A stretch of 64,000 bases of DNA, from contig CBFFRQ010000037.1 in the NCBI GenBank assembly GCA_965644315.1, forward strand, positions 53,649 through 117,648. The letters are read 5' to 3'. Shown here piece by piece: positions 52,401 to 64,000 of the stretch. Every line of letters begins with the position of its first letter. Position 1 is the stretch's first letter. The stretch comes from Caecitellus pseudoparvulus (lineage: Eukaryota > Protista > Bigyra: Bicosoecida). Made by a program: the position numbers and the translations under genes. Below the pieces are notes generated by a model. The model was not told the origin of the DNA. It saw nothing but the letters and a program-made list of their open reading frames with translations, and did not search any database.

Positions 52401-55400
52401 CAGGTCGTCAGGTGGACTCCACTCTGCTGCGAACATGGCCGATTGGGGTGAGTCTGAGGGGCCCAGAAGAGATGTGGGGGGGGTACCGTGGCGGAACCAG
52501 GAGCTGACTGGGCCAGCCGTGTCCACAGGCTTACCCCACAGCCGCACAGCCGCCCACAGCTCCTCCATGCTGCGCTGCACGGTGGCTTCCCCTTCGCTGC
52601 CTTCCGTAGGCGATGGGAGTTGCACTGTGCTGTTCAGTGCCGTGTCAGGCGCAGTGCCGTGAGAGTCCAAGGCGGCGACCAACGCTTGCATGGCTGTCGG
52701 CGGCAGCTGTGCCGTCTCGCCCACAACACGCATTGGAACGGACTGGCTACCCGCACTTGATGTGGGAGTGGCTGTGCTTGCCGCATCCACCACGCCAAGG
52801 AGGGAGGCCGGCCACCAAGGCATGGCGCCGACACGCGCCCACACGAGCTGCCCTGACGCCAGCGCTGCTGCGCACAACAAGGCCGCAGATGAGGCGGGCG
52901 GGAGGGGCAGGCCCTGGGGAGCTGACTGTGCGCCAGGCATGCTGCGCAGCATGTCGCTGCCGCCCACTGCGGCGGAGGCCCAGGCCGAGAGCAGGGAGCG
53001 GGTAGGCTGGGGCAGCAGGCGGGGCACTTCCACTTGGCCCTGTGCCGCTGCTGCAGCCCAGCTCTGCACACTTGAGCCCAGTGTAGCCTCGCCGGCGCCG
53101 CCTTGGCGGGCATGGCGCCGTTGTTCCGCAGCACATGTCGCGACAGCCTCTGCCAAGCGTACAGCCCAGTGGCAGGCGGGGCCAGTTTCGCCAACCTGAG
53201 TTTGCAGCTGTTCCAGAGTGCGCTGCACTGCGCCGGCAGTGCCCAAAGTTTGGGGCGCCATGATGTAGAGGCGCTCCGCTTCTTGCAGCGCAGAGGTGTT
53301 CAGGACTGGGAGCAGGCCAGTGCATGTGTGCAAGGCGCGCTGGCGCATGGCGTGGACATACAACGCTGCCTGGTGCAGGAGAGTGGCGGGGGGAGTGACG
53401 AGCTGTGTTGCACGACTGACAGTGCTTGGGTTGCTGCGGCTCCGCACTGTGTCATGGAACGCTACGCAGCAGATTTCCAGGTCGGCACGGCCGCTGGTGT
53501 CTGTCCTGGGCTCAGCCAAGCATGCTGACAGGGCTGCCTGGTGCAGAGGCAGCAGCTCGCCCGCAGCATCACCTGCCTCGGCACCCTGCACTGCCGCCCA
53601 CGTGTCATCCAACAGCACGAGGCGAGCGTGAGCCACACGCAATGCGGCGAGCACCACACTTGGCGGCGTCATGGGGAGCAGACCAGCAGCTTCGATGGCA
53701 GCCTTCAAGTCGCCCAAAGCGATGTTCAACAAGCGAGTGTCAGCGGCAGCCGAGCCGCCCAGATCCTGACCGACCATGGTGCTGATGCTGCGCTGCTCGC
53801 ACTGGGCGGCAGCAGAGAGGGCTGCTGCGCACTTGCCGAGCCAGGGCCCGCCCAACGTCACCAGATGTGCCGCGGACGTCACAGCGTCAACTGCGTCGCC
53901 TGGAATGTGTGTGGAGGCGGCAGGTGGAACAGACACCCCAAACGTGGCTGCCACAGCAGGCAACTGCGTGCCTGGTAGGTCCGCTGAAATGCCTGGGAGG
54001 TCGGATGCACTGGGCAGCTGGGGAAGGGGGCAGATGGAGGCACTGCCCGCGGGCAGCGTTGGACCCGACAGCGGGGTGGCACACGTCAGCGCAGCAAACG
54101 CCCCGATCAAATCCAGCACCGCATCCCCCGGAATGAGGTTAGAGGAGGCCTGTTTGGTGCGTCGAGAAGAAGGAGGGGGCTGTGCGAGTGCCACTGCGTG
54201 CTTCGCCACACAAGTGTGAATGGTGTCGACACAAGCCACGACGTGGTCACAGCGCGCCTGCACCGCCTGCACATGCGCTTCAGTTGCCTTGGCGAGAGGC
54301 GCTGGGCAGGCCTGCAGGGCTTGAAGTAGCACAGCGCCAAGCTGGTGCGCCTCTGCCCACGATGCCAAGGAAGCGGAAGCCCCAAGGCTGCGCACGTGTT
54401 CGGCCCACCTACACGCCAGCACTCTTGCCAGAAGAGCGTCGAAAGCCGGGGAGGTACGCACAGGAAACCAGAAGGGTTCTGTGCCGGGGCAGCGCAGGAG
54501 CGCCAAGCTTTCCTCCGGTGAGGGAGGTGTGCTGCGTGTGGCCAGGCTCGCAATGTCGCATTCACGTGCGTCGGCCGCAGCCACCCAGCGCTCAAACGTC
54601 GCACGGCAGGCAGCTGCAGCTTTAACAGTGGAAAGCTCAGAAAGGTGGGAAGAAGCGAGTTGAATGTCATCAAGGGATGCTGTCGGGAGACCTGGTGCAT
54701 GCAGCTGCTGAAGTAAGAAGACTGCCCGGCCGATGAGCGCCAGCACCGAACTCTCAGCCTTCAGCTCCGAGCACAAGCGCCCCAAGCTGCCGCCGAGTGG
54801 CCCAACGTCGTTCCACCTAACAGCCAGTTCCTCCCAAGCTTGCACGTCGGCATGTGAAAGCAGCGCAGTGCCTGACGGCTTCACGGCTGGGGCGGTGCTG
54901 TCCTGCAGTGCGGGGTGGGGGGCCGCCAGCTGCACGCGGCACACCGAGCACCCTGGCCCAACTTCCAGTTCTGGGCTGCCACTGCCAAGAAAGCCACTCC
55001 TGTGGAGCAAGGCCTGGAGCTCGACGCAGCGCTTGGCAGTGGACAATGCAATGGAGAGTGTGGCCTGTTCCCAGCAGTGGGCGTCGAGCACACCGGCACG
55101 ACGCGCCGCCTCCAAGGTCTGCAGGCGCCCCTCTGCGGCGTCAAGCACAGCGAGCCTACCTGAGCCATCTTCAGGGAAGACGCTGGCACTGATGGCAGGT
55201 GCTCCAGATTGTGGGTTGCCGAAAACCTCCTGCACTGCGCTGTCCACGGCCCCGACGCGCTGCACCCAGGCTTCCAGTGCAGGCCGCAGGTCGAAGTGCA
55301 CTGAGCGATCGCGAACCTTTTCCAACAGCTCCCTGGCACGCAGCAAGGCTGGGATGACAGGCTCTGTCGATGAGCTGGAGACAGTAGCCTGTGGCACATC

Positions 55401-58400
55401 AGGAATCGCTGCTTCGACATCGGCAACGGTGCGGAGGTCACCCAGCACGTCAGCTGCCGCGGTCCTGCACTCGACGGCTTCTGCCATGGAGTGCTGCAGG
55501 CGTTCAACCAGCGCACTGCACAGGCTGGCCACCGGCTCGTCCAACTCTGCCGAGCAGGCTGTCTGAGTGGCCTGGGACAGCCTCGTCACGTCTTCTGGAG
55601 TCGTGGCAGACAGGTCGCGCAACGCTGCAAGTACATTGGCCCCCGCAAGCAACGCCGCCTCGCCGCAATCGACACGGGACCGCAGTGGGAGCCCCAGTGG
55701 GGCAGACTGAAGTTGAGATTGGAGTCGGTGCGCTTCGCCAATGCAGTGGTCAAGTGCTTCTGTGATACTTGCAGCGTCCTGCGTGTCGGCTGCCACAGTG
55801 CTGAGGCGCTGCAGAACGCCTCGCCACGCTGCTGAGGCATCTGCTTGAAGCGCCTCGCTGGCTTCGACAACTCCTCGTACAGCGGCCAGGAGGGATGCCA
55901 GGGTTTGTCCCGGCGGACACGCAGCCTTGTGCAGCTGCTGCAGAGTGCAGGGGGGTCGCGTGTCGGCCACCCATGCCTCGCACGTGGACCGCACGTCCCC
56001 GAGTGCTTGCACCGTGCCCCGTGCTTGTTCCAGCGCCACAGCTCCATGTGTTGAGGCTGCAGCAGCTTGGGCCGAGGCGGCCCACAGCGCTGTGCCGCAG
56101 ATGGGGGGCACGATAGACGCCAGGGCTGATGGCAAAGCGATGCCGGGCGCAGCTTCGACGGCGGCGCCCAAAGCTGCGAGAGCCTGGTGTGGCGTGCAGT
56201 CTGCAGGGTTTGTCCGGAGTGTAGGGGCCCCTTCAGGCGCAATTGGCGCTTGCTTTGCTGCAGCATCCCCATCGCTGGTTTTGAGGATGGTGTCGATCGC
56301 TTGCACTGCTGCGGTGTCCCGTCCCAGCAGCTCACCCAGCACCTGGCGGGCACTTTGCAAGGCGGCGATGAGGCCTGCAGTGAGCTTCTGGGCCTGCACA
56401 ACTTCAGCGTTGTGCTTCAGAACCTTGGGGGCAGCTTGCAGGGCTGCCGTGACGGCGGCGAGGGGGTGTGCTGTGCCTGGGTCTGGAGTCAGGAAGTGCA
56501 GGTGTGACTGAGCCCAACCCCGCACCATGGCGTGCACCTTGTGGACATTTTGTACAGTGCGGAGGGAGGTGGGGGGCGTGCCTGCCAGTGCGTCGGTGGG
56601 CATGGTGTCGGGTGCATCCTTCACGAGGGACTCCAGAGCGGCCAGGGTGGTGGCCACCTCGGCACCCTCACGGCCCTTCGTCACCAGCGCCAGCTGGGTC
56701 AGCCACGCGCCCCATGCGACGCCAATCTGCAAGCGGGCAGCAGTGACGGACGGCACACGAATGGGCAGACACTGCACCAGGGCAGACAGCCACCGCAGCG
56801 CGCCGTGCAGTGCCCCAGCTGCAGAGAGCGCTTTGGACAGGGACACGCCAGGCTTGCTCTGCCCGAGAAGGAGCCCCCCCAGAGTGGCTGTGAGGCCGGC
56901 GACGGCGGCGTCTACGGCCAGGACAACGCCGAGGGGCCACGTGGCATTGGCACGGCAAACACCACTGTGCACCTGTGCATGTGGGCGGCTTGGGGTCGGC
57001 AGCTCAACTCGGGTGACGCTGGGGTGGTGGGTCATGAACCACGCCAGCGCATCTTCCAGCAGAGCCCTGTCTGAGACGCTGTCATCCCACGCCTGGGCGT
57101 GCTCCTGCAGATGACCTGCGAGGGCATGGCGGGCTTGGCCCTCCATAAGCACAGGGCGGTGGGGGGTGCCCAGTCCGGCTGGGTCGTACAGTGTCTCGTA
57201 TTCGCCCTCCAGCACCCACCCCACCCCCCACGTCACCGGCAGCAGGGCCGGGGAACTGCGAGGGGAAGTGGGGGCATCGGCCTGACAGCCCAGTACCTGC
57301 TGTGCCCAGTGCTGCAGGTTTGCCAGCACTGGCGCCTGCTTGGCCACCATCCCCGCCCACTGTTGCAGCGCGGCCGTGTACAGCGGCATGGCGAGTGCGG
57401 GGCAGGAAGAGGTCGCCTCGGGGGGCAGAGCTCCCTCCGTCTCTGCCTCCGCCTCAGACCAAGTGTCGGCGTCGGCGAAGTGGCGTGGAGGCGGGATGAG
57501 CAGTTTGCGGGAGGGGTGGGGTGTGGGCAGGGGGTCGTCAGTGTCACCCCCCTTCACGTCAGCATACGCTGCCAGGGCGGCGGGGGGAGTGTGTGCGCGG
57601 CACCAGGGACAGACGTACTCCTCTGCGTCCCCCGCCACGCCCTCCCCGCAGTCAGCTGAGTACAGCCACTCGCCACACGTGTCACAGCCCAGCATGAGGC
57701 GCTCCGGGGAATACCCCTCCAAGCAGCGAGAATACAGGGTGGTGGGAGCTGCCAGGGCGTGGGCCGCCACGCCACGACCACACGCATCCCGGGCGCTGGG
57801 CAGGTGCTTGCGCAGTGGAGCAAGGCCACTCGCCACCCCACGGGCCAGGGACAGCGGCAGGGCTGGCAGGTGCGGAGATAGCTCACACTGTGAGTCAGGC
57901 TCTGGGTCTGAGGGCGGCTCGGTCCATGCCTCTAAGTACAGGGCGCTGTCGGCAATGGCTGTTGCGTGTACTGCATCCCCTTCTGTCGGCTGCTGCGCCA
58001 ATCCCTGGTGTGATGTCACAGCGCTGAGCCAGGCAGCTCGTTGAGGAAAGGCTGCCTCTGCACCAGCTGGCTGGCTCAAGTACTGCAGGGAGCCGGAGAG
58101 CTCTCCACTGCCCGTGGCAGGCAGCAGGCGGAATGACATTGCCTGCAAGTCCACTGGCGCTGCTCGGCGCCCCCACAGCGCGCAGCAGCCGTGCACCCAC
58201 TGCTGCTCGCCTGCGGAATTCGCATGGCACCGCACCAAAGCCGGTGGGGCCAGCGACTGGGACGGCAGCGCCAGCTCAGCGCCTCGAGGCGGTTCAGTAT
58301 ATTTGCTTGACATCCATGTGATGTCCTGGGAGCCGCTGCAGATGCTGCAGGGCGGCGTGCTCACGCTGGAGCCGGGCAAGGGGGTCTGCGTGTCAGCCAC

Positions 58401-58781
58401 ATGCCTGCACCAGGCACACTTCCACGCAGCGCCCTGCTGCACTGCCGCGTAGCCTGCCCCCACACACCCCGCATGCACAAGTGTGCTGCAACTTCCACAG
58501 CGCAGGGCAGCCGACGCGACGAACCAGGCGCCTGGGTCTGAGATTTGCGCCTTGGCGCCTGGCTCGGGCAAGCTGGTGTCCCCCTCCCCGCCACTGTTGC
58601 TGGGAAGGGTGTGGGGGTACAGCGGCGCCTCGTCGCGGAAGCCAGTGGCGCACACTGTGCATCGCAGGCCTGCTGCGTGGGCTGTCGCCAGCGCCCCCCG
58701 CAGCCATGCGCTGCGGGCAGCGGCACCGCCTTCGCCTGTCAGGTGCGGCGGCGGCCCGGCCTCGGCCGCGGCAGCGTCCAT
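49440..58781 (-). CDS. Large chromatin/transcription-elongation protein: PHD fingers, long helical region, PWWP, TFIIS central domain, SPOC (PHF3/DIDO/Bye1-like)
   Basis: CTVC..CGSC..VHAGC..WKCAWC; MLGCDTCGEW..YVCPWC; LVWARVGAMPWWPA; KYKEQLLAMTLNLQDPSNPTLRQRVMSGDLPPERLGTMSTLDMAS; LKQVGRMR...QVFVIPP. Confidence 0.8.
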   Translation of the reverse strand: MDAAAAEAGPPPHLTGEGGAAARSAWLRGALATAHAAGLRCTVCATGFRDEAPLYPHTLPSNSGGEGDTSLPEPGAKAQISDPGAWFVASAALRCGSCSTLVHAGCVGAGYAAVQQGAAWKCAWCRHVADTQTPLPGSSVSTPPCSICSGSQDITWMSSKYTEPPRGAELALPSQSLAPPALVRCHANSAGEQQWVHGCCALWGRRAAPVDLQAMSFRLLPATGSGELSGSLQYLSQPAGAEAAFPQRAAWLSAVTSHQGLAQQPTEGDAVHATAIADSALYLEAWTEPPSDPEPDSQCELSPHLPALPLSLARGVASGLAPLRKHLPSARDACGRGVAAHALAAPTTLYSRCLEGYSPERLMLGCDTCGEWLYSADCGEGVAGDAEEYVCPWCRAHTPPAALAAYADVKGGDTDDPLPTPHPSRKLLIPPPRHFADADTWSEAEAETEGALPPEATSSCPALAMPLYTAALQQWAGMVAKQAPVLANLQHWAQQVLGCQADAPTSPRSSPALLPVTWGVGWVLEGEYETLYDPAGLGTPHRPVLMEGQARHALAGHLQEHAQAWDDSVSDRALLEDALAWFMTHHPSVTRVELPTPSRPHAQVHSGVCRANATWPLGVVLAVDAAVAGLTATLGGLLLGQSKPGVSLSKALSAAGALHGALRWLSALVQCLPIRVPSVTAARLQIGVAWGAWLTQLALVTKGREGAEVATTLAALESLVKDAPDTMPTDALAGTPPTSLRTVQNVHKVHAMVRGWAQSHLHFLTPDPGTAHPLAAVTAALQAAPKVLKHNAEVVQAQKLTAGLIAALQSARQVLGELLGRDTAAVQAIDTILKTSDGDAAAKQAPIAPEGAPTLRTNPADCTPHQALAALGAAVEAAPGIALPSALASIVPPICGTALWAASAQAAAASTHGAVALEQARGTVQALGDVRSTCEAWVADTRPPCTLQQLHKAACPPGQTLASLLAAVRGVVEASEALQADASAAWRGVLQRLSTVAADTQDAASITEALDHCIGEAHRLQSQLQSAPLGLPLRSRVDCGEAALLAGANVLAALRDLSATTPEDVTRLSQATQTACSAELDEPVASLCSALVERLQHSMAEAVECRTAAADVLGDLRTVADVEAAIPDVPQATVSSSSTEPVIPALLRARELLEKVRDRSVHFDLRPALEAWVQRVGAVDSAVQEVFGNPQSGAPAISASVFPEDGSGRLAVLDAAEGRLQTLEAARRAGVLDAHCWEQATLSIALSTAKRCVELQALLHRSGFLGSGSPELEVGPGCSVCRVQLAAPHPALQDSTAPAVKPSGTALLSHADVQAWEELAVRWNDVGPLGGSLGRLCSELKAESSVLALIGRAVFLLQQLHAPGLPTASLDDIQLASSHLSELSTVKAAAACRATFERWVAAADARECDIASLATRSTPPSPEESLALLRCPGTEPFWFPVRTSPAFDALLARVLACRWAEHVRSLGASASLASWAEAHQLGAVLLQALQACPAPLAKATEAHVQAVQARCDHVVACVDTIHTCVAKHAVALAQPPPSSRRTKQASSNLIPGDAVLDLIGAFAALTCATPLSGPTLPAGSASICPLPQLPSASDLPGISADLPGTQLPAVAATFGVSVPPAASTHIPGDAVDAVTSAAHLVTLGGPWLGKCAAALSAAAQCEQRSISTMVGQDLGGSAAADTRLLNIALGDLKAAIEAAGLLPMTPPSVVLAALRVAHARLVLLDDTWAAVQGAEAGDAAGELLPLHQAALSACLAEPRTDTSGRADLEICCVAFHDTVRSRSNPSTVSRATQLVTPPATLLHQAALYVHAMRQRALHTCTGLLPVLNTSALQEAERLYIMAPQTLGTAGAVQRTLEQLQTQVGETGPACHWAVRLAEAVATCAAEQRRHARQGGAGEATLGSSVQSWAAAAAQGQVEVPRLLPQPTRSLLSAWASAAVGGSDMLRSMPGAQSAPQGLPLPPASSAALLCAAALASGQLVWARVGAMPWWPASLLGVVDAASTATPTSSAGSQSVPMRVVGETAQLPPTAMQALVAALDSHGTAPDTALNSTVQLPSPTEGSEGEATVQRSMEELWAAVRLWGKPVDTAGPVSSWFRHGTPPTSLLGPSDSPQSAMFAAEWSPPDDLPGVIAWVPLRLLAPWGQAHVACAWAAELRDAELRTSTARALRTPAKHTTGDGAVPPAVLRTRQLRLVQRLERAQASRARALGLASPQDTSASHGKRSRTKAQTASITDVLPTNVDPQGVCSKLLGGMNPASSSIHQRLLAGDTPYRHAVTAAVQHVTQGILDQCSRTIVSSQWSAWLSGCLASGRPDADQEGVVAGEGAGLILSEASSDGSLGAGPDSEADSDHEEPQASERPGKARRKRSQGAKPGGQRGGAGGGDSSDDSLYGDPVTPSATSTAQDGAPSRSLGPSHHQRLQRLLQSRPRRPLKVARKAPKPTPTDASGSSDGKAKTKVSNEAIRAKARTMLAGAVAGAKLSDAVIEVLPHATSTPVAGVSLPNLRKAVELANAAEAAMHAKYPLSSARNKYKEQLLAMTLNLQDPSNPTLRQRVMSGDLPPERLGTMSTLDMASAEVQATRASITAEGIQAAGSAAPSRPVPPPDSSGKTATDKDDKPKPKAAPVATPKPPPATKKRVAPAKTSVLSSLIKRTRIGPDTKLPPVTTKQPGTAQGSGSLPAERPASLGQDVQANAGGKSTCSLAIVGEMPGVPKTVTATGTALRHSARSSSVVASALARASEGTPTPAGRTLAQSLFSDVAQKYEAPGYTVDVASVQELHRTGLPPALKQVGRMRLEALGSYLLDIHTRMQRGSRALAVFKVDTAGQGVGALCTALASAGRAGVFDVADSADINKGTQVFVIPPITALAREDSGTTSLARLATLPQDTRGLFCMLLSAYSLPPASPAAVLVHKKTAPPKPQHKRPSKSAARGIKRRAERVHDEDKPPKTSRSDPTPSRDSPAGGLLDRPDAPAQAAAAQPAFLVSTDPDPHYASLATQAPAPTLGHAPAAAFGDPYGLSAAPQTSLLSMQPPAPAPAPAPAPAAAKPSRLAGLAAMLSSLPATSAPTPAPAPAPITTQGSAYAPRPAGTGGGGLLGAGPTQPQQHGNRGSRWGR

Positions 58782-59156
58782 GGGGCCCACCCAGAGAAGA
58801 CAAGAGGGGAGTGGGGGTGAAGAGCGCAATGTGAGAGGTGCGTTTGGTGAAGGGGCCGCGGCACAGGGCGCTCGAGGTTATGTCGAGGAGGGGAGTATGT
58901 GGATGGCTGCGGAATATGGCTCACCAAGACTTGGGATTCTGAGCAGTCTGCAGGCGGGGGGGGAAGGGGGGCGTCAGACTCGATGCCCACAGCGCCAGAG
59001 CTAGGTAGTCCACACATTAAATACCTCGCGGCAAGAGCATCAGGCCCACTCCTTCCCTCGGCGTGCGTCACCTTGCATTGCGGAGCATTGCAGCGCGTGC
59101 ACTTCCTGGCTGGCAGCGCCGCGCTGTGACGGGAAGTGCTCTTCGCTGCGCGCGCC

Positions 59157-60496
59157 ATGGCATCGGCTGGTCAAAAGAAGCAGTTAAAGGATCTGCTGGC
59201 GCTGCCGGGGAATGACCGCTGTGCCGACTGCAGAGCGCAAGGTGCGGTGGTTGCGCCGTGCCAGCTGCTCCAATTTCCGCACGAGGCCAACCCTGCCGCG
59301 CTCCCTGCACAGCCCCTTCATGGGCCAGCATCAACCTGGGCGTCTTCCTGTGCATCGAATGCTCCGGCGTACATCGCCGGATGGGCACCCACATTTCCAA
59401 AGTGCGGTCCGTGACGATGGATGCGTGGCAGCCTGCATGGGTCAGTCACATGGCCCAGGTTGGCAACGTCAACGCCAACGCCCGGCTGGAAGCCAACATG
59501 CCGGCGGACTGCGTCATTGAGCCCACCTGCTCGCCAACTGTTCGCGAGGACTTTGCCCGCCGCAAGTACGAGCGCCAGCTGTGGGCAGATCGCGCCACAC
59601 CCTCCACTGTCGCCCAGGCCAGGCAGCGCCTGTTAGTGGACGAGCCAGCCAACACAGCACAGAAGCTGGCCATTGCTGCGCCAAAAGACGGCGATGCCAC
59701 GCCTCCAGCGGGACGCTCTGTGAACCCCGCCGTGGCGCGGCGCCTGGCTCGCCTGGGCAGGACCCCCGTCACCAGCTCCAGCCCCGAGCCCCCCCAAACC
59801 ACCACGGCACCGAGCTCAGAAGTGGACGACCTGCTGGGCCTGACGCCTGTGCCGTCGCCGCCCGCCACAGGGTTCTCCTTCTCGCACGGCAGCTCCGTGG
59901 CGGGCGGCGGCGGCGACGGAGGTGCTGGGGGGTTTTCCTTCTCACACGCCACGGGGGACGTGCCGTCAAGTGCTGGCCCGGGTACCAGCCTGCCAGCTGC
60001 TGCAGCACGCTCACCAGTGCATGTGGAACCCCCCACTGCGTCAGTCTTGCACGCGACCCGTCGTCGCAGTGCATCAGGTGACCTCTTGTCACTGTCGTTC
60101 GGAGGGGACACGACAAGTCAGACGGCCGCACCAGGTCCGTTCCAGGGTGGGAGGCAAGCGTTTGGATCCAGCGTGGCCCAAGCAAGTGACCAGCGCGGGA
60201 TGTTTGGGGCGTCGACTGGGTCGGAGCAGCAGACCTCGCCTGCCGCTGTGTCGGCTCTGGCGCAGAGCATTCTTGCCAGCGAAGCCTTCGCTGCATGTGT
60301 ACTAGAACCCACAAAAGCCAGCTCAGCTGACCAACGCCGCGCAGCAGCGGCGGCCTTCCTGCGCCGAGTGCAGGAGGAGGTTCTCAGCGCACTGCAGGCG
60401 AGCGAGCCCGAGGCACAGGATGCAGGCGCTGGGCGCACTGCAACTGGAGGCAGTGACAGCGCACCACCCACGCCCTCAGGGTTTGCATTCATGTAG
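59157..60496 (+). CDS. ArfGAP (SMAP/AGD5-like); intron 59242-59312
   Basis: Spliced [67 protein letters not shown]. Confidence 0.92.
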
Positions 60497-60994
60497 ACCG
60501 TTGCGTTGCTGTCGCGGTCCTGTTGTGTGGCGTGCCGGCTCGCTAGCCGATGGCTGTGCGTGGATTGATTGAAGGCAACGCAGCCTCTGGTGCAGGTGAG
60601 AGCCAACCCAGCCTTGGCAAATGCAGTGATGCGATGCTGCTCTAGTAGTAGGTTGGTTGGGAGATCGTCGTGAAGGCCACTTGCTCCGAGTGGACTGTCG
60701 GCCTGCCTCATTCGCTGCGCAGTTGCTGGGGTGAAAAATTTTCCATCTCAGCTGCTTGCCAAGCCTCCCGAGCATCGATTGACACCTCGCTGGATACCAG
60801 CTGTGCTCAATAGCTTCCATCTCGAAGCAAGGCGCCTTACTGATGTCACACATCCGGCAATTCAAGTGTTGCTTGAGGAAGGGGCGGTGCTGCCGCCTGC
60901 TGGCCTTGTCGCCAAACACGCATAAAATCTCAATACCGTTGCATTCACCACAACTTTACCGATGACCCCCGATCTCAACAGCCGATCCCCCATC

Positions 60995-62701
60995 ATGGCT
61001 GCTGCAACGCCACACCACACCCGTGCGAGCACCAGCGCACCCCGGTGCACCTGCGAGAGGGCCACCACCACCACCTCCACCTCCACACACAGAGGCCAGC
61101 CCTATAGTAGACGAATGGGGCGATGTGAAGAGCAACTACGACAAATCTTTCAAGTCCTTTGAAAGTATGAGCCTCAAGGATGACCTCCTGGTGCGTGGAT
61201 GCGTCGCTTTTGGAGCAGCTGCACGATCAGAGTGCAGAGGTCGTTCTATTCCCGCAACTGGTTTCGGCAACGGCACGCGTGCACAACCCAGCCAAGAGCG
61301 TGGCAGCTCGATGAGCGCCGCGTTTGACTGCCCTCACTACACTGTGCTCTCGTGCCTCCTTACACAGCTTGGCGTTATTCGTGCGTGAGGACCGCGTGCA
61401 AAGGGCGACACATGCACACCCTTTCGCGGAGCAAGCTGTGCACGGCGATGATCCCCCCTCTACCTCAGAGTGCGGCTTTGAGAAGCCGACACCCCTCCAG
61501 CAGCGCGCCATCATGCCTTTCATTGAAGGCCGTGACACCATCGCGCAGGTGCGTACTGTGCAAAGGTGTCGGCGGAAGAGAGGCCACAGTGACAGCAGCA
61601 GGATACACACCGCTCACAGCCGCTAAGAGGGCCACGGCTGCCTCTACACCCGCCCGACCTTCCCACACACGTCTCACTGAGTGGCACCCGTGACCCCCAC
61701 CACAGGCCCAGCCCGGCACTGGCAAAACTACTGCCCTTGCCATCAGCGCGCTGCAGCGCATTGACGAGGCCTCGCTTCACGTGCAGGCCGTCATTTTGGT
61801 CCCTGCATATGACGCCATGCGGAAGACTGAAGAATTTATCACCAGCATTGGCTCATATATGCCCATCAGAGTGCGCGCGTGTGTGGGCTTTGGGCTCGTG
61901 GCCGATGACATCGCCGCCCTTCGCTCCGGGGTACAAGTAGTGGTAGGGTCCGCTGCCCGTGTCCTCGACATGATCAACCGCCGTGCCCTGGACGTGTCCC
62001 ACCTGAAGCTGCTCATCCTGGACGATGCCGACCAGATGCTGGACCGCGGCTTCAAGGAGCAGATCTACGAGATCTTCTCTGCTGGCCTGCCCAAGGACAT
62101 GCAGGTGGCCCTGTTCTCCGCCACCATGCCGCCTGAGGCCCTGGAGCTGGCCACCAAGTTCATGCGGGACCAGGCCATCATCCTGGTCAAGCGCCAAGAG
62201 CTGACGCTGGATGGCATCAAGCAGTTCTACATCAAGGTGGACAGCGAGGCGGCCAAGTTCGACACCCTGTGCGGCCTGTTCGAGAGCACGACCGTCACCC
62301 AGAGCATCATCTACTGCAACACTCGCCGGAAAGTGGACCTGCTCGTCACCCGCATGAAGTCCAAGGACTTCACCGTCTCCTGCACGCACGGCGAGATGGA
62401 ACAGCACGACCGGGAGGCAGTGCTGCAGGAGTTCTACTCTGGGGCCTCCCGCGTCCTCATCACCACCGACCTCCTGGCCCGCGGCATTGACGTGCAGCAG
62501 GTGTCCCTGGTCGTCAACTACGACCTGCCCGTTAAGCGGGAGAACTACATTCACCGCATAGGGGGCCCCTCCAAACATGGCGACAAGGGCGTCGCCATCA
62601 ACTTCGTCACCAGCGAGGACGTCACCTTCATGCAGGACATCGAGTCCTTCTACCATACACACATTGAGGAGATGCCTGACTCGGCAATTGATTTCACGTG
62701 A
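60995..62701 (+). CDS. Divergent eIF4A-like DEAD-box protein with degenerate catalytic motifs; exons 60995-61022, 61093-61190, 61368-61380, 61469-61548, 61706-62701
   Basis: [80 protein letters not shown] are all eIF4A hallmarks. All four introns are GT-AG and in frame. Confidence 0.88.
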
Positions 62702-63211
62702 TCAAGTCATCTGGCGCTGGTGCCTCTGCTTCTAGTCCGAACTGCACTGTTCGCTTGGGTCCAGCATGTTGCCCAAGGTATTGTATCCACGACCTTTTAT
62801 TTCAATTCACGGGTCGTTTGTTTCGTGGCGCACATTCACCGCTCATGTCTCAGTATGTTTGGCACGCGAATGCACGCGTTCACTGGCGATTTCCGTCTGC
62901 GATTTCCGCAAGGACCACCGCGGTTTGTCGGGCCAGTGGAATGCGACGTCAAAAATTCTGACAGCAGCAGCACCCTAATCTTGAACACGTATGTGTCTAA
63001 ATTAAGTGAGTGTTTCCTTCGCTTCAATTGTCGCTTCCTGCCGGCGGCCTTGTGATGAATTTCAGGTCTAATGCGCAGAACGGTAAAATACTCTTGCGGC
63101 TGGGCGTCAGCCGGTGGAGCATATTCTGGTAGGTTCGAGCAGTGCCAAGCTTAGCCAGAGTCTAAGGGATCAAAAGGCGCAAGATGCATTCAACTATCCA
63201 GCAATACAAGC

Positions 63212-64000
63212 TTATTTGGCCTTTTGGACCCTCAACAGCAACATTCGCGCCCTCCCTTGCCTGGTACTGGTGCCGCTCCACACGGCATCCTGCGCCGCTC
63301 GCGTGGCGAGTTCTCGCGCCTCACACCTGGCTTGGAGTGGGATGGCTCGTGTGCCAGTGAGGGCAAGTAGCTCACGCAGCACATCCTCGCACTCACCAGC
63401 GCACGCACGCCGGAAGCCGGCATCTGGTCCGCCAGCGTCAGCGGCGTGTACGTCCACGGCCCGCTCCCCGGTGAGTGCCAGGAGATCGCGCACGACTTCC
63501 ACATGGCCGTTGCGGCAGGCCTCACGAAAGCCCATTTCCGGCCCATGGCGGTCTCCCGCGTGCACGTCCACGGTCCGGTGTCCAGTCAAGGCTAGGAGCA
63601 TGCGGACGACAGGGACACAGCCCCCCTGGCAAGCGACACGAAAGGCGTGCTCGTCGCGGACGTGCACGTCGACTTCTCGTGCTCCAGTCAGGGCAAGCAG
63701 CTCAGCCACTACTGGCTCGTGGCCCCCTTGGCATGCCCAGCGGAAGGCGTACTCCTCATTCTCGTGCACGTCCACCGAGCGGTGACCCGACAGGGCCAGG
63801 AGCTCGCGCACGACATCCACATGGCCATGCAGGCAGGCCCACCGCAAGGCGTACTCTCCACGGGCATGCACGTCGATCTCACGGTCGCCGGCCAATGCCA
63901 GGAGTTCACGCACGACGTGCAGGCGGCCACGCTGGCACGCACTTTGAAAGGCCCGCTCCTGCTTGAAGTGAACATCCACAGCCCGGTCACCTGTCAGTTC
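63212..64000 (-). CDS. Ankyrin-repeat protein, 5'-truncated by the window edge
   Basis: Six or more 37-41 aa repeats VDVHxxxExAFRxACxxGHxxVVRELLALTGxR. The frame is open to base 64000 (ELTGDRAVDVHF). Confidence 0.9.
   Translation of the reverse strand, partial: ELTGDRAVDVHFKQERAFQSACQRGRLHVVRELLALAGDREIDVHARGEYALRWACLHGHVDVVRELLALSGHRSVDVHENEEYAFRWACQGGHEPVVAELLALTGAREVDVHVRDEHAFRVACQGGCVPVVRMLLALTGHRTVDVHAGDRHGPEMGFREACRNGHVEVVRDLLALTGERAVDVHAADAGGPDAGFRRACAGECEDVLRELLALTGTRAIPLQARCEARELATRAAQDAVWSGTSTRQGRARMLLLRVQKAK

Follow-up and report, generated by a model that had tools for sequence, protein, structure and literature searches.

A strain-variable eIF4A paralogue of Caecitellus pseudoparvulus with altered ATPase and RNA-binding motifs, a candidate pseudo-helicase

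The window analysed here, a stretch of 64,000 nucleotides (nt) from the bicosoecid Caecitellus pseudoparvulus (assembly GCA_965644315.1, contig CBFFRQ010000037.1, positions 53,649-117,648 of the forward strand), carried at window positions 60995-62701 an eIF4A1-type gene, hereafter W, with alterations in helicase motifs I, Ia, GG, Ib, II and VI. Our preferred reading, to which we assign a probability of roughly 55%, is that W is a lineage-specific eIF4A duplicate kept by selection as a regulatory or dominant-negative pseudo-helicase, which probably acts by binding partners. Its scaffold would have remained under purifying selection while the catalytic and RNA-binding motifs were released or changed, and patches of the gene would have been repeatedly overwritten via gene conversion from active paralogues.

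The genome containing W (G000; 30.6 Mb, 215 contigs) encoded four eIF4A1-type genes and one eIF4A3-type gene (L005). Besides W, which was single-copy, the eIF4A1-type genes comprised the canonical paralogue L002 (G000:C87:17603-18592) and two divergent copies, L003 (G000:C44:25283-26254) and L004 (C30), both of which retained every catalytic motif.

Motif changes in W

The fifth exon of W matched the Pfam families DEAD (PF00270; 1e-27, 97 bits) and Helicase_C (PF00271; 9e-27, 94 bits), and its best relative of solved structure was human eIF4A1 (1.2e-110), with eIF4A3 close behind (6e-108). Its motifs were compared with those of human eIF4A1 and of 115 eIF4A homologues. A sequence-only reading of this DNA had listed changes in motif I, motif Ia, the GG doublet, motif Ib (TPGRV to SAARV), motif II and motif VI, and had described SAT, TRRKVD, QxxR and motif V as intact; every one of these changes and retentions was recovered in the alignments (Table 1).

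The glutamate of motif II, replaced by aspartate in W, was 100% conserved in the homologues, and the three substitutions in motif VI (R287G, G289S and R290K) each fell at a 100% conserved site. In the alignment with human eIF4A1, residues D107, G287 and K290 of W occupied the positions of E183, R362 and R365. Motif I still followed the pattern AxxGxGKT, the replaced serine being 98% conserved. At motifs Ia, GG and Ib, W carried residues found at frequencies of 0.00-0.01 among the homologues, and in all three the RNA-binding consensus was replaced. The intact elements were SAT, motif IV (IIYCNT/TRRKVD), QxxR (QHDR) and motif V. In the Q motif (GFEKPTPLQ, with the upstream aromatic residue in SFES), the Gln and Phe were retained and S/A/I were changed to T/P/L.

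Several substitutions went beyond those listed earlier, including the RGIRAY stretch before the Q motif, which read LGVIQC in W, as well as F11L, Q40K, V44F, D190G, Y192F, I197V, R244Y, F291H and R293D. Overall, W was changed at 26 of the 160 sites conserved in at least 95% of homologues, compared with 1/160 in L002 and 11/160 in both L003 and L004, and the residues of W at these 26 sites were nearly all at frequencies of 0.00-0.01. W thus reads as a predicted pseudoenzyme, a clear homologue of an active enzyme without its catalytic residues.

Table 1. Positions of the features of W and its surroundings in the window.
Feature	Start	End	Strand	Description
Strain-variable segment	60642	62890		2,249 nt; whole W plus 353 nt upstream and 189 nt downstream
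Exon 1	60995	61022	+	ATG plus 25 nt; MAAATPHHT and first base of next codon
Intron 1	61023	61092	+	70 nt; GTGCGA..CAG
Exon 2	61093	61190	+	98 nt; retains aromatic residue upstream of Q motif
Intron 2	61191	61367	+	177 nt
Exon 3 (micro-exon)	61368	61380	+	13 nt; LGVI and one base
Intron 3	61381	61468	+	88 nt
Exon 4	61469	61548	+	80 nt; Q-motif region
Intron 4	61549	61705	+	157 nt
Exon 5	61706	62701	+	331 codons and TGA; motifs I to VI, both RecA-like domains
Motif I	61706	61729	+	AQPGTGKT, S to P; Walker A Gly-Lys-Thr retained
Motif Ia	61802	61819	+	PAYDAM instead of PTRELA
GG doublet region	61886	61894	+	GFG instead of GGT
Motif Ib	61949	61960	+	SAAR instead of TPGR
Tract identical to L003	61967	62025	+	15 concordant polymorphic sites, permutation p = 0.0002; gene conversion
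Motif II	62021	62032	+	DDAD, GAG to GAT at 62026; equivalent to human E183D
Tract identical to L002	62151	62242	+	16 concordant polymorphic sites, permutation p = 0.0002; gene conversion
Motif VI	62552	62575	+	HRIGGPSK instead of HRIGRSGR; equivalent to human R362G, R365K

Selection on the coding sequence

Pairwise YN00 estimates mostly failed or were saturated, and a GY94-type branch codon model with a separate omega (ratio of non-synonymous to synonymous rates) for the W branch was used instead on W, L002, L003 and L004. In the segments of exon 5 unaffected by gene conversion (codons 1-90 and 271-331, 151 codons), omega was 0.114 on the W branch against a background of 0.190, and omega = 1 was rejected (2dlnL, twice the log-likelihood difference, = 45.2; p = 2e-11). 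Over the whole of exon 5, omega on the W branch was 0.143 and omega = 1 was likewise rejected (2dlnL = 58.8). Across analyses the value ranged from about 0.11 to 0.17, no higher than in the paralogues. The W branch did not differ from the background (p = 0.18-0.69), and since the two-ratio model was no better than the one-ratio model, W as a whole does not appear to be relaxed. Nei-Gojobori distances, partitioned by hand, put omega for the W branch at about 0.3. Among the codons with changes private to W, 35 of 61 altered the residue, compared with about 77% expected without selection (p = 5e-4).

The changes at conserved sites were unevenly distributed. W was altered at 14 of 48 motif sites and at 12 of 112 non-motif sites (p = 0.009), and in the unconverted segments the corresponding counts were 13/27 and 5/42 (p = 0.0016). 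The active sisters had no such motif excess (L003, 3/48 vs 8/112; L004, 0/48 vs 11/112), and in the same diverged segments they were changed at 4/42 and 7/42 non-motif conserved sites. As these sites were changed no more often in W than in its active sisters, the scaffold appears to be under purifying selection, which indicates, as far as the substitution pattern can tell, that it is as constrained as theirs and that only the ATPase and RNA-binding motifs were released or changed. The earlier proposal of a conserved scaffold whose changes cluster in the functional motifs was thus supported by these counts, and its further suggestion of selection rather than random decay fits the low omega values together with the intact frame and splice sites. 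The stop-free frame was dropped as a proof of selection in its own right, because 13% of simulated frames contained no stop when 85 substitutions were placed at random among the 453 diverged bases.

Gene model and integrity

W comprised five exons and four introns on the plus strand, and its exon-wise translation gave 404 codons followed by TGA (coding sequence of 1,215 nt), with the frame open from ATG to TGA and without a stop, frameshift or indel. All four introns were of the GT..AG type, every donor reading GTGCG(A/T) and every acceptor CAG. The full-length frame with four clean introns that the first reading had described was therefore borne out by the exon-wise reading, as well as by the architecture shared with the paralogues. 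Exons 3, 4 and 5 were 13, 80 and 996 nt long in W, L002, L003 and L004 alike; exon 2 was also 98 nt long in L002 and L004, and exon 1 of L004 matched that of W (28 nt, GTGCG donor). The 13-nt exon with CAG|..|GTGCGTGA boundaries was present in 4/4 eIF4A1-type copies, reading RGIR or RGIV in the paralogues and LGVI in W.

The introns differed in length in each of the four copies (e.g. intron 2, with 150, 160 and 192 nt in the paralogues), and their alignment reached 70% compared with 74-79% for shuffled sequence, values that were obtained with lenient gap costs and serve only as evidence of unalignability and length difference. Searches with W used exon 5 or other single exons as query, while residues 1-73 were translated and compared by eye with the paralogues. 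A processed or disrupted pseudogene was rejected, as W retained four introns with canonical ends and had no stop or indel in its 404 codons.

Gene conversion and codon bias

The nucleotide identity between W and its paralogues varied strongly along exon 5, from 50-62% at codons 16-60 to 92-99% at codons 106-180 (96-99% with L002) and 68-80% at codons 271-331. The most diverged stretch was the motif Ia region, with 19 private bases within codons 31-45. Two tracts, one identical to L003 and the other to L002, were attributed to gene conversion by Sawyer-type permutation (Table 1). The L003-identical tract stopped precisely where the DDAD codon has its private T. Across codons 91-180, W had merely three private bases, all of them non-synonymous (E107D, T149A and R180S). 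The locus is a compact example of gene conversion opposing functional divergence, with the DDAD codon at the edge of a tract.

The GC content at third codon positions (GC3) of exon 5 was 0.68 at codons 1-90, 0.92-0.93 at codons 91-270 and 0.80 at codons 271-331. In the unconverted 5' part, it was lower in W (0.68) than in the paralogues (0.78-0.91). The difference in codon bias between the 5' and 3' halves, which the sequence-only reading had linked to a duplicate diverging asymmetrically, is therefore real, but it does not reflect simple asymmetric divergence: conversion tracts shared with the paralogues alternate with unconverted ones.

Similar patterns were observed at the canonical locus of metagenomic contigs from ENA. 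In contig L013, codons 211-255 formed a tract that matched W at 98-100%, the product of either conversion in the reverse direction or an assembly chimera; W-type DNA was present in that sample, as this holds under conversion and chimera alike. L013 and a second ENA contig of the canonical locus, L014, had different mosaic patterns, and both possessed an L003-like tract at codons 96-114 that the canonical copy of G000 did not have. These mosaics represent either ongoing conversion among paralogues or assembly chimeras.

Phylogeny of the eIF4A copies

In the maximum-likelihood tree, W grouped with L003 and L004, and this group was sister to L002. The eIF4A3-like L005 fell outside the clade of W, L002, L003 and L004 (nesting support 100/99); W is thus an eIF4A1-type gene alongside L002 and not an eIF4A3. 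The four copies were placed within a clade of unnamed environmental sequences whose nearest named relative was Cafeteria, with Pythium and Tribonema on the opposite side of the midpoint root. This position of the four copies indicates that the eIF4A1-type duplications are lineage-specific. The tip branch of W (0.29) was longer than those of L003 and L004 (about 0.15-0.2), without being extreme. Locating the canonical eIF4A of the same genome and building a tree, as had been proposed from the sequence, thus yielded L002 and a placement of W as a lineage-specific, fast-evolving paralogue beside L003 and L004.

Two observations concern related eIF4A sequences. Motif I of L003 read APNGSGKT in G000 and AQSGTGKT in the near-identical ENA protein P0003, so that motif I of this paralogue varies between strains. 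In addition, the ENA protein P0001, encoded on a 2,373-nt contig, was a 579-residue eIF4A of another organism with its C-terminal half present twice, which may reflect either a partial duplication in tandem or an error of the assembly.

Variation between strains

W was not present at the same site in all related strains. A contig of a strain about 2% diverged (L024; NCBI GCA_905221625.1, contig CAJNDU010009645.1, deposited as Symbiodinium sp. KB8), reached via the neighbouring ArfGAP gene, matched the window on both sides of W by blastn (window 55064-60641 to L024 1-5580 at 97.8%, and window 62891-63686 to L024 5611-6407 at 94.9%), with about 30 nt of other sequence instead of the segment containing W (Table 1). 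The flanks of the segment were single-copy in G000. Capture or insertion by a transposon was rejected, as no terminal inverted repeats or target-site duplications were found at 60642/62890 and the flanks were unique.

As W was absent at the syntenic site, it is either dispensable in the related strain or located elsewhere in its genome. The synonymous distance on the W branch (Nei-Gojobori method, NG86) came arithmetically to about 0.7, compared with about 2% between the strains. Because the unconverted parts of W diverge far more than the strains do, W is much older than the strain split, and its absence is therefore more likely a deletion or relocation than a sign of recent origin.

In other samples, Logan contigs of the runs X5 (a marine metagenome) and X7 (a run of another organism) contained W along with the introns and the 3' flank; the identity was about 97-98%, and the depth resembled that of a single copy. 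These contigs were DNA-type, with the W introns retained. The T at 62026 that creates DDAD was retained in both, at about single-copy depth. Three differences were displayed within the coding sequence specific to W, at 61891, 61966 and 62560, all of them at third positions and synonymous by codon reading. One indel among these contigs was intronic (61357), and two others (62170 and 62178) lay in exon 5 of a single X5 contig that differed from W at 11/139 bases. A further run, X14, included 240 nt of W, its nature as RNA being a guess only. Splice joints in the read-contig comparison were rejected as evidence of W splicing, as they belonged to contigs of paralogues.

Alternative explanations

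It is possible, although we judge it clearly less probable than selection for a non-catalytic role, that W is a duplicate in the course of being lost, with no function or next to none, in which the catalytic motifs decayed once expression or the need for it had gone. Its intact look would then result from youth in that state and from repair by conversion, and the deletion in the related strain would be the expected end point. The statistically supported conversion tracts with both L002 and L003 suit such a history, as does the presence/absence difference between strains so closely related, and the simulations above make the absence of stops weak evidence to the contrary. Several further points also weigh against a selected pseudo-helicase. 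W is absent at the syntenic site of the L024 strain, and the GC3 drop to 0.68 in the unconverted 5' part is consistent with weak expression of W or with its having escaped GC-biased conversion. In the polyA metatranscriptome X15, a spliced canonical-type contig about 90% identical was found, and no certain RNA contig covered the W-specific parts. No W orthologue from outside the strain complex was recovered: word-based protein searches, one with the whole exon 5 and one with its divergent first 105 residues, returned eIF4As of paralogue type and canonical ones, the divergent part being matched at 69% at best, and JGI metagenome contigs yielded nothing above 45% to the W-specific N-terminal part. 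The codon model assumes stationary composition, which the shifted composition of W violates, and omega averages over a long branch, which may conceal a recent period of neutral evolution worth a few percent of divergence. Partner binding, nucleotide binding and the loss of ATPase activity are, moreover, attributed to W from knowledge of the motifs.

Against decay, the unconverted segments are themselves at omega values of 0.11-0.17, well below 1. Neutral drift is also disfavoured because changing 13 of 27 motif sites should have altered other conserved sites too, and those remained about as unchanged as in the active sisters. There were no indels in 1,215 coding bases, though the introns of the same copies vary in length, and all eight splice ends and the 13-nt micro-exon were retained. 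Where strains were seen to differ in the coding sequence specific to W, the differences were, furthermore, synonymous. These observations lead us to prefer a selected pseudo-helicase over a dying duplicate.

That W might still be an active, if unusual, RNA-dependent ATPase in which the altered motifs are tolerated, specialised in the manner of L003 and L004, seems quite improbable. The Gly-Lys-Thr of Walker A, the first Asp of motif II, SAT, motif IV, QxxR and motif V are all intact, the change from E to D is chemically conservative, and W has an omega as low as that of its active paralogues. Nevertheless, six motifs are altered at positions invariant in the 115 eIF4As, and all three RNA-binding elements of the N-terminal domain (Ia, GG and Ib) are replaced. 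The equivalents of E183, R362 and R365 are changed as well, and R362Q alone makes eIF4A dominant-negative (PMC10362145). Least probable of all, and very improbable in our view, is an assembly or annotation artefact such as a chimera of paralogues. Long identical tracts are indeed common to the paralogues, and the mosaic difference between L013 and L014 at the canonical locus could be chimerism; however, W is single-copy in G000, and the W-specific segments recur, joined to the introns and 3' flank, in the independent runs X5 and X7.

Possible role

If W is a selected pseudo-helicase, nucleotide binding would perhaps be retained, while ATP hydrolysis and RNA clamping would have been lost, judging from the motifs. 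With these two activities presumably gone, W would work through protein contacts. Its likeliest partners would be MIF4G/MA3 proteins of the eIF4G or PDCD4 type; G000 encoded MIF4G loci as well as a tandem-MA3, PDCD4-like locus (C68:1245022-1245774), the MIF4G/MA3 loci lying at C13:135320-136579, C67:360917-361837, C67:796435-797406 and C53:629752-630249. W would thereby resemble the dominant-negative E183Q/R362Q mutants and serve as a brake on, or modulator of, eIF4F. Since a close strain is without W at this locus, such a function would be accessory and not essential.

A bolder version, which we consider doubtful, is that W is a naturally evolved dominant-negative eIF4A carried as a strain-variable accessory gene, which, hydrolysing no ATP and clamping no RNA, would tie up either partners of the eIF4G/PDCD4 type or eIF4A-targeting factors, for example viral proteins or natural products directed at eIF4A. 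Selection would then shield the dead motifs from overwriting by the frequent conversion from active paralogues. If this were true, W would give the cell either a decoy or a brake that can be switched to control cap-dependent initiation. Expression of W would imply that a dominant-negative initiation factor can evolve as part of a cell's own gene set. The four-copy set, in which one member is canonical, two have diverged with their motifs intact and one is motif-dead, offers a direct test of which eIF4A functions need ATP hydrolysis.

Comparison with known systems

eIF4A is the founding DEAD-box helicase, and its catalytically dead point mutants, among them the laboratory dominant-negatives E183Q (DEAD) and R362Q (motif VI), are standard tools for blocking translation. 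W is substituted at the same positions (E183D and R362G, and also R365K) on an eIF4A-like scaffold. Unlike these mutants, it is without the RNA-binding motifs of the N-terminal domain and differs from the canonical protein at about 23% of exon-5 residues. The well-characterised eIF4A-R362Q inhibits translation by blocking the recycling of eIF4A through eIF4F (PMC10362145).

W shared the five-exon architecture, length and two RecA-like domains of the canonical L002; protein identity between the two was 77% over exon 5, and nucleotide identity reached 99% inside the conversion tracts. Unlike L002, it had altered motifs I, Ia, GG, Ib, II and VI and a weaker codon bias, and it was not found outside the strain complex. 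The eIF4A3 of the same genome (L005), a close DEAD-box relative 54% identical to W, retained every catalytic motif, unlike W. Within the exon junction complex, partner proteins keep the ATPase of eIF4A3 in an inactive state.

Pseudohelicases are barely documented as a class. Utp25/DEF, a DEAD-box-derived pseudohelicase of the small subunit (SSU) processome, was described by its authors as only the second to be proposed (PMC9539457). Like W, Utp25 combines a DEAD-box fold with vestigial motifs, and it is kept for a non-catalytic role. It is, however, ancient, universal in eukaryotes, essential and very distant from eIF4A in sequence, whereas W is young, strain-variable and about 60% identical to animal eIF4A1. 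A natural, genome-encoded dead eIF4A paralogue was not found in the literature by full-text word searching, which cannot prove absence.

A second degenerate eIF4A-like gene was present in the same genome (L022:1918-2934, minus strand, corresponding to G000:C87:27917-28933), about 10 kb upstream of L002. Like W, it was eIF4A-derived and had lost motif II (YAVD). Its motif I read SASGSGKS, and it retained Ia (PTRE), GG and Ib (TPGR), all three of which W has lost. No helicase motifs were recognisable in the translation of its C-terminal domain, and the domain itself could hardly be made out. This gene is much older and more degenerate than W (about 32% identity over residues 3-164). It was also found in contigs L013 and L014 of related strains, which cover its C-terminal part of ~629 nt, or 209 codons; there it differed from them at 2.9% of bases, synonymously in 8 codons and non-synonymously in 10.

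Neighbouring genes and other observations

W and L004 both carried Leu at exon 5 codon 87 (window 61964-61966), where human eIF4A1 has F163; F163L, a rocaglate-resistance substitution of eIF4A, is a subject of the literature on rocaglates. Look-ups of the exact products for two possible gene calls of W found neither on record.

Upstream of W, an intronless-looking ArfGAP gene (59258-60496, plus strand; PF01412, 2e-31) ended about 500 nt before the ATG. It was 97% identical to the ENA protein P0127, which clusters with the NCBI entry 'AGD5' (CAE7345244.1), and one ENA contig carrying it stopped 72 nt past the gene, short of the W site. Downstream, a spacer of low GC content (62702-63250; 0.48-0.53) separated W from the next open frame, and the identity to the related strain was 94.9% in the spacer after W compared with 97.8% upstream. 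The window ended with the contig, 1.3 kb past W.

An annotated gene of L024 (5933-7683, minus strand, 470 aa) had no Pfam hit on record. As L024 was 97.8% identical to a 30.6-Mb genome whose eIF4A genes group with stramenopile-type sequences, the dinoflagellate assembly GCA_905221625.1 seems to contain contigs of a co-cultured protist.

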